Shown one piece after another: positions 1-15,666 of a DNA stretch of 64,000 nucleotides; positions within the stretch are counted from its first letter, which is position 1; the number at the start of each line of letters is the position of its first letter. The position numbers and the translations under genes are program-made. Source of the stretch: Amoeboaphelidium protococcarum X5 (taxonomy: Eukaryota; Fungi; Aphelidiomycota); assembly GCA_023515725.1 (NCBI GenBank), contig JALDTO010000215.1:335053-399052 (forward strand), in the 5' to 3' direction. Under the pieces are notes generated by a model. That model had not been told where the DNA came from. It did not search any database and saw only the letters and a list, made by a program, of their open reading frames with translations.

Positions 1-538
1 AAAAACTATTTTCCCAGATATAGCAATTAGTACTTAAACTTTAGACTTACAATGATCCCATAAGTTATAGCTGAATGCACACGTAAAAATGTTGACTATA
101 TTTGTCTAAACGTTTAGCTAAAAATGTAAAGAAAGGGAGGACAAGGCGCGCGGAAGAAAACTAGAGGAAAATTCTCTGTACGATAATTATCACTCACTCG
201 CTCACTCAGTCAATCAGTCACAGTGCAATGGCTTCAATGGAGATGTAGGAAATAGGAGAGGAAAGACTGACGCGTACATTGGAACGCCTCCAATTGATCA
301 ACTCAAGGAGATATGTTTCATATTGTTAACACTCAGCCTCCCATGCCCACCAAGAATGAGTCTCCAGTATTGTGGATAATGTTGAATGATTGATTGGTCA
401 AGCCTTAGAACATCCCAACAGCCAATCGTAGAATACCATGTAATTGGCATTATTTTTCGGTCACATAAACTATACTTCATGTTACTTCGACTACACAGTA
501 CATTGTCCTTTTTCAACTCAGATACCGTCTTCTTTAAA

Positions 539-2158
539 ATGTAATACCTTGTGTGGAAATTGTGCTCACTTTTAGCGACAGTTGTGATCTTCACGCGGTC
601 GATACCAAGCGAAGATCTGCCGATCAAATGCCGATTGAGAGACAATGCGCCTGCTGGTGAAGGACCAGATAGTTGTGCGTCCTGTACAAGGTAAGCCGTT
701 GTAAGTGAATTACCTTCTATACCCTGCTCTTCTAATGCTATTACTCGGGCATCTTCATCTACTGCATCCTCCACGGTCTAGGTGATTTCTTCTACGCCGA
801 GCACTATTACTTGGGCTGTTGTGAAAAGCACTACTTGCACATCGTCGCAGTTAATCAATACCTTTAGCTAAGATAAGACCTCTGCTATTCCAACTACTTA
901 GCCCAAGTTCACCTAATATACCTCCTCTCAGATCACTAGTTCATAGTCTAAAGCTGTTAAAACCGAGTACGGTTCAACGTCTACACTGTCTACTAATTAT
1001 ACCTCTACTGCAGATTAGATACCCTCGTTAACTAAAACTTCCTCTTGCTTATTAAGAACTTCTGCACAGGAAAGTATTTTTGCTTCAACGTCTACTACTA
1101 TAGCAGTGTCCACTACCACTGTAATATCTACCCCTAGTACAAAGACGCGTCGTAAAATCCGTACATAACGTGTAAATTCGTCTTATTACTCTTCTGCTGC
1201 ATCATCTAGTGCATTGTCTGAGACTAAGACTCGTCCGACTGCATCAACCACGGTGCGTACGACAACACATTAGTCTATTCCTACCTCCAAGCCACTCAGG
1301 TCTTCCGCAAAAGTCTCCAAGACCAAGACCAGGCCTACCACTTCCAAGAAAATGTCTACTACTACTGTTCATCCTCCCAAGACTACCACGAGACAGCCTG
1401 TGATCACGCCTACTCCAGAGAGACCGTAAAACCCAGTCACTGTGCCTGAACCTCCGCCTCCTGCTAAACTGCCTATGCCACTCTCATAAAAACCCTTAGT
1501 TCCCGCATCGCCTCCTCCACCTGCACCGCCAGTTGACGATGTACCAGTGGACAATGGCAGTAGTTGCTGTGCATCCCCTCTGGTGTTTGATGTCAACTAC
1601 GATTGGCGAGTGTAAGTCAAATTTGGCACCGGTATCTGGCTGGATCCTAGTAATGTAACTGAACTGCATGCCGGAGCTGACGGTGGTGATGTGATGCTGG
1701 CAATGCCTGATATGAATGGAAATGGTCAGATTGATATTGAAGAAGTGTTCGGTAATAGAACATTGAGTCCATTTACTAATGTGTCATATAAGGCAGCTAA
1801 TGGGTTTGAGGCTCTGCATTAGTTGGCTATTGAAGCTGATGCATAGCCTTTATGTACAGAGAAGTCTGCCAATCCTAAAGATAAGTCTGTATTGGTGTCA
1901 CTACCTAAACTGAAAGCATGTCTGTAAAAATATGGTCATGATCTTGGCTTCATAAGTGGGGATAATGTGAAGGTATTGTAACCTCTGAATCAAGTGGACA
2001 CTGTTGATGTGGTCGATTACGTTGAGACTCCTGATGATTGTAAAGGTGGTATGAAGCATGCTCAAAAGGGTCATTATTATGATAAAGCTGGTCATGAATG
2101 GCGCGTTGATGATGTCTGGTTCATGACTGGAACTCCGTACAGTAAAGGTTTAATTTGA
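539..2158 (+). CDS. Secreted protein (539 aa): signal peptide, Ser/Thr/Pro-rich stalk, C-terminal FrpC self-processing-module-like Ca-binding domain (copy 1)
   Basis: Open from ATG 539 to TGA 2156-2158 with TAR=Gln. N-terminus MQYLVWKLCSLLATVVIF. C-terminal domain SPLVFDVNYD...DMNGNGQIDIEEVFGN...AANGFEAL...DDVWF. Near-identical paralogous domain at 14161-14745. Confidence 0.85.
1574..2158 (+). repeat. Inverted repeat arm 1 (585 bp), partner at 14161-14745
   Basis: Gap-free alignment to the reverse complement of 14161-14745; differences are almost all synonymous. Confidence 0.95.
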
Positions 2159-2400
2159 GTGTTTTTTCTTTAGCAATATGTTAGTACCAAGCGCCTTTAT
2201 AAGCATGAATTTCTAAACAATATAGTATATCGGTATAAAGGTGCTATTTGCAGGTTCAATCACGTTTACTTTGAATGTATCAACGCGCGGATCTATGTTG
2301 TACTCAGTCAACGTCGTTATGAGTACTAAAATAGCATTGGGAAATCATGTTGACCTCATTAAAAAGACAGAAAAGGATATTCCTATCACTTGTAATAGTA

Positions 2401-14160: not shown

Positions 14161-14745
14161 TCAAATAAAACCTTTACTGTACGGAGTTCCAGTCATGAAC
14201 CAAACATCATCGACGCGCCATTCGTGACCTGATTTGTCATAATAATGTCCCTTCTGTGCATGCTTCATACCACCCTTACAATCATCAGGAGTCTCAACGT
14301 AATCAACCACATCAACAGTATCCACTTGATTGAGAGGTTACAATACCTTCACATTATCTCCACTAATGAAGCCAAGATCATGACCATACATTTACAGACA
14401 CGCCTTAAGTTTAGGTAGAGATACCAATACAGATTTGTCTTTAGGATTAGCAGATTTCTCAGTACATAACGGCTAAGCATCAGCTTCAATAGCTAGCTTG
14501 TGTAGAGCTTCGAACCCATTAGCTGCCTTATATGACACATTAGTAAATGGACTCAATGTTCTATTACCGAACACTTCTTCAATATCAATCTGACCATTTC
14601 CGTTCATATCAGGCATTGCCAGCATCACATCACCACCATCAGCGCCGGCATGTAGTTCAGTTACATTACTAGGATCCAACCAGATGCCGGTGCCAAATTT
14701 GACTTACACGCGCCAATCGTAGTTGACATCAAACACCAGGGGGGA
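14161..14745 (-). repeat. Inverted repeat arm 2, partner at 1574-2158
   Basis: Direct sequence comparison. Confidence 0.95.
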
Positions 14746-15666
14746 TGCGCAACAGCTACTACCATTGTCCATAGGTGGCTCTTCAGCTACAGGTGGAGGT
14801 TGAGGTATCGGAGCAGGTACTTAAACAGGATACTGAGGCCGAGGTGCAGACAGAGGAGACTATGGTTTAAAAGACGGCGAAGTTTACATTGGGGATGGCG
14901 ACGGATGAGGATTGGGAGCAGGAGGAGAAGGAGCTTTTGTTGGAGGCTCTTTCGGTGGAGGAGTCTTGTGAGGATATTTATGAGGAGTCTTATGAGTAGT
15001 CAGTGTCGGTGGTGTACCGGTAGGCGGGGATGGAGGTTACTTTGGAGTTGGCGACGGAAGAGGACTGGGTGCAGGATGAGAAGGCGGTTTTGTTGGTGGC
15101 TCTTTCAGTGGTGGAGGGGGAGGATTTTTAGGCTTGTGAGGTGGTTAATGAGGAGTCGGTGTCGGAGATGGAGGCTACTTTGGAGGCTCATACGGTAATG
15201 GAGGCACGGAAGTCGTAATCTCCGGGGTGTTTGTAGAAACACAACTAGTCGTTAGAGTACTTAAAGACGAAGGAGGCACCGACGTTGTTGAATTAGGAGT
15301 TTCCACAGACTGAGACGAGGTTACTATAGAAGTAGATGACTCGGGAGTCTTGGTCTGAACTATACTTCTTTCTACACTAGTGGAGCATGGGGTAGCGGAG
15401 GATTCGCTTTTGTGAACCGCGTCACAGCGGTCACTACCGCAGTTTAAGTAAGACTCTTACGGCATCCCATACTGTTTAGACGCAATCTGACCAGGAGAGC
15501 TACTAGTATCGCTGTTGCTATTGCCATACTGATTTTAATTTAATACTCTCAGACGACACTTGATAATATTAGCACCTTATGGTTCCATATTCTCCGGCAG
15601 AGCCCAAGCAGACGTGACAATCAAAAGCACTAAACCTAAAAATGTAGTATTAGAACTAAAATGCAT
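14161..15666 (-). CDS. Secreted protein (501 aa): signal peptide, Ser/Thr-rich then extensin-like Pro-rich stalk, FrpC-SPM-like domain (copy 2)
   Basis: MHFSSNTTFLGLVLLIVTSAWA signal; IKCRLR motif shared with copy 1; C-terminal 194 aa differ from copy 1 at 4 positions by my reading. Confidence 0.87.

Follow-up and report, generated by a model that had tools for sequence, protein, structure and literature searches.

The self-processing module (SPM) is a domain of bacterial proteins such as FrpC, in which the scissile bond joins Asp414 to Pro415, and an Asp-Pro pair is given in the literature as its defining site (PMC7078468, PMC7846742). A gene of the alga-parasitising aphelid Amoeboaphelidium protococcarum raises the question of how such a domain came to stand at the end of a eukaryotic secreted protein, and of what it can do there when the aspartate is missing. 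The gene occupies positions 539 to 2,158 of the plus strand in a stretch of 64,000 nucleotides, here called the window (assembly GCA_023515725.1, contig JALDTO010000215.1, positions 335,053 to 399,052 of the forward strand), and encodes a secreted mucin-like stalk protein that ends in a compact head. An earlier note, made from the sequence alone, had recognised at this locus a secreted eukaryotic stalk protein with an SPM-like domain, a reading on which sequence, profile, fold and tree now agree. The head is a homolog of the bacterial module, it was acquired by one horizontal transfer from a family of Melainabacteria (Vampirovibrionia) type, and the SPM fold has become fixed in this eukaryote, in about 27 genes under strong purifying selection. 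No paper describing an SPM in a eukaryote was found in the literature. The domain family is known; what is new is its eukaryotic form, which is transferred, expanded, joined through Ser-Pro or Cys-Pro, reduced to two Ca sites and stapled by cysteines, presumably through a disulfide.

Architecture of the protein and identity of its head

The gene can be read only if the codons TAA and TAG (TAR) specify glutamine, as had been proposed, and the peptide quoted in the earlier note is an exact match to that translation. There are 17 in-frame TAR codons among the 540 codons of the gene, and the sole TGA is the terminal one at 2156. In alignments of the paralogs these codons pair with the glutamine codons CAA and CAG, and the reverse also occurs; codon 359, a TAR codon in the window gene, is Q in two of the paralogs (L003 and L004), and a glutamine in the EF-hand loop of the head likewise supports the reassignment. 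The Rpb2 genes of the same 23.6-Mb genome contain 12 TAG and 2 TAA codons in frame. Translation of the window gene with genetic code table 6 was carried out with local scripts only, and the homology queries were stop-free pieces of the window gene, a paralog (L027:1973-2539, minus strand) and the database ortholog KAI3649545.1 (P0002), a hypothetical protein of Amoeboaphelidium protococcarum with a head about 97% identical to that of the window protein. The paralog was chosen because its head, 49% identical to the window head, is free of TAR codons.

The stalk of the window protein (residues 35 to about 340, some 310 amino acids) consists of 36% Ser plus Thr and 11% Pro and is probably O-glycosylated. 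The hydrophobic N-terminus in front of it is a predicted signal peptide, and the head that follows it, about 180 residues long, closes with VDDVWF (residues 523-528) and an 11-residue tail. A short motif, [IV]KCRLR, lies 5-10 residues past the signal peptide in most paralogs (loci L003-L033), and KCR was found in 21 of the 25 paralogs for which the N-terminus was recovered. Relatives from environmental eukaryotes also have the motif, as KCRP repeated four times in one (L100, 612-2633) and as MKCRLR in another (L103, upstream of 1595), the latter with a G+C content of 59%. Possible roles of the motif are as a disulfide anchor or as a site of processing.

The head of the paralog L027 aligned with the FrpC module from the Protein Data Bank (PDB) over the full length of the chain (query residues 12-187 on 1-166), with an expect value (E) of 1.8e-8 for entry 6SJW and 4.2e-8 for 6SJX. 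A profile built from aphelid paralog fragments only (A1) matched 6SJW at E 6.6e-7, and against 1.8 billion sequences it reached bacterial SPM-bearing RTX proteins at E of about 1e-9 to 1e-10; a profile including the bacterial relatives (A3) matched the FrpC module at E 7.4e-36. The four SPM blocks named in the earlier note fall in order, aligning with FrpC residues 415-580 in HMMER. The predicted structure points the same way. The AlphaFold2 model of residues 355-559 of the ortholog has a predicted local distance difference test score (pLDDT) of 92.1 and a predicted template modelling score of 0.89. Foldseek searches with this head model returned only 6SJX (E 3e-7) and 6SJW (E 9e-7), at a probability of 1.00, the next match being at E 0.18, and VIA-align gave Z scores of 13.5 and 12.3 for these two entries against 2.8 for the next-best structure. 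The best VIA match has a root-mean-square deviation of 3.2 Å over 145 residues, and VIA-align places model residues 10-200 on 6SJX residues -2 to 174. This unique match carries weight because the SPM fold is unlike anything else in the PDB (Kuban et al., PMC7078468). In a comparison of ESM Atlas features, SPM clusters (PF26745 of Pfam 38.1) made up 29 of the 30 top matches; the best fold match there was a Melainabacteria cluster, with a template modelling (TM) score of 0.87, and classical SPM clusters scored 0.65-0.70.

The window-type head on its own, searched as the 97% identical head of the ortholog, gave nothing significant against the PDB, and the homology of the window copy therefore rests on the paralogs, the profiles and the fold. 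Pieces of the window gene yielded only sub-threshold EF-hand loops (PF00036, PF13202) from the PDB and from a Pfam set that lacked PF26745, the best score being 20.5 bits against a gathering cut-off of 25.4. NCBIfam, which holds no SPM model, gave only a weak match to XopAW (E 0.07). Precomputed annotation reports 'faint' SPM matches on two eukaryotic relatives (P0008 and P0053). We consider the head confirmed as a true homolog of the bacterial FrpC module.

The head could be compared with FrpC site by site, using the definitions of Ca sites and ports in PMC7078468 and the positions given by the alignment of the L027 paralog to 6SJW. Both share the fold, with two perpendicular beta-sheets, a helix-turn-helix and adjacent N- and C-terminal strands, and the first residue of the module, proline, is retained in the window head and its paralogs. 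FrpC binds Ca2+ at D419-G424 plus D456, at D462-E474, at D499-D511 and at D521-E532 (PMC7078468). At the first site (D-x-N/D-x-D) the window head keeps D, N and D, and Gly424 of FrpC has become Trp in the window clade; the second is intact as a perfect 12-residue EF-hand loop. The alignment shows no counterpart of the third and fourth sites in the aphelid heads, so that the replacement of two central Ca loops asserted in the earlier note is borne out. The pi-pi pair W451/W519 is also missing, its positions aligning to Ala, Arg or Leu or to gaps. The port residues are kept: F476-G477, G491 and D579 of FrpC correspond to EVFG, NGF and VDDVWF in the aphelid head (F-G, N/H-G-F/Y and the D579 equivalent), and D, W and F of DDVWF are nearly invariant in the alignments A2 and A3. 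D579 has a role in the 'narrow port' of FrpC (PMC7078468). The aphelid module differs in being terminal where that of FrpC is internal, within an RTX protein that a Gram-negative bacterium exports by a type I system, in having Ser or Cys in place of the scissile Asp, and in its passenger, which has neither RTX repeats (Pfam found none in the ortholog) nor a type I secretion signal but a Sec signal peptide and a mucin-like stalk.

Two cysteines, Cys439 and Cys461, are kept in every paralog read and probably form a disulfide where the Ca loops have been lost. The environmental eukaryote clade (P0008, P0009, P0010, P0021) does not have this pair and conserves another, one cysteine in LAM-C-D before the EF loop and one in x-C-D-LGF. 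The differing pairs of the two clades suggest that disulfides arose independently after the transfer.

Bacterial relatives and origin of the head

Searched exhaustively with HMMER and the aphelid-only profile, a set of 1.84 billion representatives yielded 652 proteins at E < 1e-3, 101 of them at E < 1e-30. The matches fall into tiers: Amoeboaphelidium itself, a few eukaryote-like environmental sequences, about 90 bacterial proteins whose module lies at the C-terminus, and long RTX-repeat proteins with an internal four-site module at E of about 1e-9. The bacterial C-terminal tier, at E 1e-40 to 1e-50, shares derived features with the aphelid heads, namely G-D-K/V-M-L-A-M before the EF loop, EVFG-x-x-T, NGF-x-AL, the DDVWF ending and the missing Ca sites 3 and 4. 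The module stands at the extreme C-terminus throughout, with a tail of 0-28 residues in about 105 cluster representatives.

The 66 bacterial loci recovered from reference genomes belong almost entirely to metagenome-assembled genomes of Melainabacteria/Vampirovibrionia, labelled Gastranaerophilales, Vampirovibrionales, Caenarcanum or "Cyanobacteria bacterium", with a few under other automatic labels. Several are on contigs of 0.4-1.2 Mb, frequently in multiple copies; one locus with four copies was seen once (L072), and two others (L060 and L078) are also arrays. The strong C-terminal type is patchy: of the sampled genomes, 4 of 201 in the donor class have it, and 1 of 251 in the phylum, namely the centre genome. 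The Melainabacteria domain, for example that of MDD3237842.1 from Candidatus Gastranaerophilales, is 40-47% identical to the aphelid head, has the GDKMLAM motif, has a Ser-Pro junction in three quarters of cases and includes the best structural match. It differs in carrying Asp-Pro in about a quarter of cases, in usually having one Cys where the aphelid head has a pair, and in its passengers, which are rich in Gly, Asn and Asp and lack the signal peptide, KCRLR motif and Ser/Thr/Pro stalk of the aphelid proteins. Many of these proteins (P0012, P0016, P0018, P0022, P0024, P0026) share the N-terminus M-S/G-L/I-I/V-D/N-A-L-Q/K-x-G, a possible secretion signal, and continue in repeats rich in Gly, Asn and Asp. 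One Melainabacteria protein (P0013) combines DUF3060 with RTX repeats. The best-matching Melainabacteria cluster of the ESM Atlas has no common Pfam family, and the analysis thereby identifies a donor family that current Pfam barely detects.

A phylogeny of bacterial and eukaryotic sequences, as had been suggested in the earlier note, was inferred with IQ-TREE under LG+C20+F+G4 from 76 rows, with RTX-internal modules as outgroup. The RTX-internal modules split off at 100/100, and all eukaryotic sequences form one clade (100/98) that lies inside the bacterial C-terminal type in 200 of 200 bootstrap trees. Within that clade the aphelid paralogs (98/82) and the environmental eukaryotes (98/88) are sister groups. 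A quick tree of 151 rows agrees, and among the 150 best of the 652 matches the eukaryote-like sequences are a single clade. The environmental relatives use the standard code, have Thr-rich stalks and adjoin IFT80/122/172 and Rpb2 genes. The tree shows that the domain came by one horizontal transfer from a family of Melainabacteria type. Horizontal acquisition, as claimed in the earlier note, thus stands, with the correction that the family is not confined to Amoeboaphelidium; in the simplest history a single passage from bacterium to eukaryote preceded the split of the aphelid and environmental lineages and so predates Amoeboaphelidium. It is a clean example of a bacterial gene passing into a genome whose genetic code has been reassigned.

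In the donor family the module was already C-terminal, mostly Ser-Pro, and without Ca sites 3 and 4 or the Trp pair. The Ser-Pro junction and the lost Ca sites, which the earlier note had treated as alterations of the eukaryotic protein, are present as it described but are not eukaryotic inventions; they were inherited from the Melainabacteria donor group. In the eukaryote the head gained a Sec signal peptide, the KCRLR motif and Ser/Thr/Pro stalks by fusion, and the gene multiplied to its present number.

The residue before proline and the function of the head

The junction of the window protein reads Cys343-Cys344-Ala345-Ser346-Pro347, with Ser in the place of the scissile Asp when aligned to 6SJW, as the earlier note had it. 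Among 27 aphelid paralogs 21 have Ser before Pro and 6 have Cys, and across the sampled eukaryote clade this residue is Ser in 10, Cys in 3, Thr in 1, Ala in 1 and Asp in none. The Melainabacteria C-terminal type has Ser in 86, Asp in 27, Cys and Thr in 1 each and Ala in none; the nearest RTX-internal modules have Ser in 13, Cys in 1, and no Asp, Thr or Ala. Ser-Pro is thus far commoner than Asp-Pro among the sampled bacterial relatives, including RTX-internal modules with four Ca sites, with a slight bias toward Ser-Pro from the sampling profile, which had Ser or Cys at the junction column. At least 11 switches between Ser and Asp occurred on the tree, and single bacterial genomes encode both kinds of junction (for example Ser at L042 and Asp at L047). 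That Ser-Pro outnumbers Asp-Pro, the only state that has been studied, raises the question of whether the strained SPM junction supports a chemistry other than the anhydride. In a set of 212 heads the residue two before the D579 equivalent (residue 523 of the window protein) is Val in 104 and Ile in 18 of the 153 with Ser-Pro, and Ala in 29 of the 37 with Asp-Pro. This covariation suggests, without establishing it, a packing of the junction residue against the C-terminal strand; no more than 5 independent pairs fall on supported branches, with a sign-test p of about 0.5.

In FrpC the Asp carboxylate is the nucleophile that forms an anhydride (PMC7078468), and the substitution D414A abolishes cleavage (PMC7846742). 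Because the anhydride-forming Asp is replaced by Ser or Cys, the known Asp-Pro clip-and-link reaction should be impossible for the aphelid head, and judged from the sequence the Asp-anhydride chemistry is excluded there. We picture a head that would fold early in a Ca-rich secretory pathway, around the two Ca sites it has kept and the probable Cys439-Cys461 disulfide. It would not be cleaved off but would remain, stable, at the end of its flexible glycosylated stalk, at the surface of the parasite or at its cyst wall, where its function would most likely be binding or adhesion. To this non-cleaving, Ca-binding head we give about an even chance. On this account the proteins would be a candidate surface or adhesion family in the lineage sister to Fungi. 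Fusions to an Asp-Pro SPM pre-cleave in the Ca-rich mammalian secretory pathway (PMC12538545), and it is proposed that no eukaryotic copy has Asp at the junction because an Asp-Pro module would fire prematurely in the endoplasmic reticulum.

Several points weigh against a head that is merely retained. The missing Asp-Pro in eukaryotes is statistically weightless, as the eukaryotes are one clade. The position before Pro is no part of the folded module, and nevertheless every paralog has Ser or Cys there, and nearly every relative Ser, Asp, Cys or Thr; the proline and the port residues near the junction (EVFG, NGF, DDVWF) are conserved as well. Such a pattern is expected if the junction keeps a chemical role. 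The binding role and the uncleaved state of the head are presumed, as are the signal peptide, the O-glycosylation and the disulfide.

In the main rival account the Ser-Pro or Cys-Pro module might still process itself by another chemistry. Folding would strain the junction, and the Ser or Cys side chain would act as nucleophile, for instance through an acyl shift (N-to-O or N-to-S) at the bond before it. The ester or thioester so formed would free the head and leave the stalk with an activated C-terminus that could be linked covalently to the cyst wall, the host algal wall or a partner. This possibility, which we hold to be real but doubtful, would account for a residue before Pro that is limited to potential nucleophiles, with Asn and Gly absent, and for the many switches between Ser and Asp, each needing two or more base changes. 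The conserved Pro+1 and junction port residues fit it, as do the constant position of the module at the extreme C-terminus, where a leaving group would be found, and the model, in which residues 11-20, the block with the junction residues, have a mean pLDDT of 96 and are thus predicted to be ordered. However, cleavage is not known for any Ser-Pro or Cys-Pro SPM. The strained bond of FrpC is the X-Pro bond itself, where attack by Ser on its own carbonyl would make a four-membered ring, and strain at the bond before Ser is not known. Moreover, Ser, Thr or Asp before Pro also fits the capping of Asx/ST turns, the residue two before Pro is variable, unlike that of most autoprocessing sites, and a Ca-triggered reaction would fire in the Ca-rich endoplasmic reticulum before export.

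A bolder extension, which we regard as speculative and rather unlikely, is that Ser-Pro and Cys-Pro SPMs are a second class of fold-triggered self-processing domains, with a hydroxyl or thiol nucleophile, that in aphelids would cut themselves loose and graft the different stalks, about 27 in number, covalently onto the cyst wall or the wall of the algal host. If true, a bacterial protein-ligation chemistry would have been domesticated by a eukaryotic parasite. For self-processing at the junction the C-terminal domain of Hedgehog (Hint), inteins, and the SEA and GPS domains, all autoprocessing domains with a Ser, Cys or Thr nucleophile, offer an analogy, having a terminal module with Ser or Cys as the boundary residue, whose removal can activate the C-terminus of the passenger. 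They have no relation to the aphelid head in sequence or fold, and they cleave before the nucleophile at conserved motifs that the aphelid family does not have.

The remaining alternatives concern origin and identity rather than function. That the domain is an old eukaryotic one, inherited vertically, or passed from eukaryotes to bacteria, is very improbable. The family and the KCRLR motif do occur in standard-code environmental eukaryotes, and the Rpb2 of one of these is only 64% identical to that of the Amoeboaphelidium genome, from which it follows that the gene was not acquired recently, and sampling of the eukaryotic range is poor; yet the eukaryotes form one clade nested in bacteria in every bootstrap tree, with a bacterial SPM outgroup, and bacterial SPM diversity spans several phyla. 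It is scarcely credible that the resemblance to the SPM is a mere shared EF-hand-like loop on an unrelated eukaryotic Ca-binding domain. The window pieces and the ortholog alone do give only sub-threshold EF-hand matches, and the head shares with canonical EF-hand proteins one perfect 12-residue loop (residues 391-402), but this loop lies within a beta-rich SPM fold with no helix-loop-helix pair, and the paralog and the profiles align with 6SJW over its full length, find RTX proteins and are joined by a unique fold match. Bacterial contamination or mis-assembly, for which the bacterial affinity of the head and nothing further speaks, is excluded for practical purposes because the gene contains 17 TAR codons read as glutamine and the head is in frame with a eukaryotic signal peptide and stalk, and because there are 27 copies on 9 contigs, the gene has eukaryotic neighbours and the same gene occurs in independent DNA runs.

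The gene family in the genome

Six-frame searches of the genome located about 27 copies of the gene on 9 contigs. The paralogs follow a common plan: a signal-like N-terminus comes first, most have [IV]KCRLR near residue 30, and behind a stalk the head stands at the extreme C-terminus. Their stalks are 170-416 amino acids long, with 24-41% Ser plus Thr and 11-31% Pro. The features of the window gene, and a second member of the family in the same window, are listed in Table 1.

Table 1. Features of the stalk-protein gene and of its second copy in the 64,000-nucleotide window
Feature	Positions	Strand	Basis
Complete coding sequence, 539 residues plus TGA, TAA/TAG read as Gln	539..2158	+	17 in-frame TAR codons, no internal TGA
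Predicted signal peptide, residues 1 to about 21, core LCSLLATVVIF	539..601	+	Sequence reading; hydrophobic N-termini in paralogs
KCRLR motif, residues 30-34, just past the signal peptide	626..640	+	Kept in paralogs
Ser/Thr/Pro-rich stalk, then Pro-rich linker and Cys-Cys-Ala	641..1573	+	Composition
Junction Ser346-Pro347, at the position of the FrpC scissile Asp414-Pro415	1574..1579	+	HMMER alignment to 6SJW/6SJX; VIA-align
Head with SPM fold, residues 347-528	1577..2122	+	Match of paralog to 6SJW, AlphaFold, Foldseek, VIA, ESM Atlas
Remnant of Ca site 1, D-V-N-Y-D-W	1589..1606	+	Alignment to FrpC D419/D421/D423/G424
Ca site 2, 12-residue EF-hand loop DMNGNGQIDIEE, FrpC D462-E474	1709..1744	+	Alignment; sub-threshold EF-hand matches
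Segment in place of Ca sites 3 and 4, with Cys439 and Cys461	1853..1921	+	Paralog alignment
C-terminal strand VDDVWF, FrpC M577-L582 ('narrow port', includes D579 equivalent)	2105..2122	+	Alignments
Second paralog, Pro-rich stalk	14161..15666	-	Head 97.5% identical in protein to the first

The two window copies form an inverted repeat of 661 nucleotides, with arms at 1498-2158 and 14161-14821 and about 12 kb between them. Their heads differ at 44.5 synonymous and 5.5 non-synonymous positions, giving a synonymous divergence (dS) of 0.44 and a ratio of non-synonymous to synonymous divergence (dN/dS) of 0.026, and their stalks are only about 22% identical. The heads are therefore under strong, long-term purifying selection while the stalks diverge. 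Recent gene conversion between the inverted copies is ruled out by the dS of 0.44.

Some 10.5 kb upstream of the window, on the minus strand (G000:C214:322806-326009), there is a third copy of the same sub-clade, which has a CCAS-P junction, and together with the two window copies it makes the locus a small cluster. Near-identical pairs of family members were seen across contigs (C146/C155, C207/C233 and C214/C264), and Rpb2 is present twice (C192 and C221). Paired family members and a double Rpb2 are as expected of two diverged haplotypes or subgenomes.

Contigs from two runs of unknown kind (X9 and X10) cover 576-2126 of the window. Depth in X10 is zero on both flanks (1-536 and 2145-2412), and in X9 it is low upstream and absent just downstream. 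This layout is a hint, though not evidence, that the contigs represent a transcript of the window gene; the contig layouts of the two runs show no joints that would be signs of an intron. Parts of the gene region (window 300-2400) were also found at 90-99% identity in a biofilm metagenome from 2013 (X5) and a freshwater metagenome from 2024 (X13), and related strains were therefore present in the biofilm and freshwater samples.

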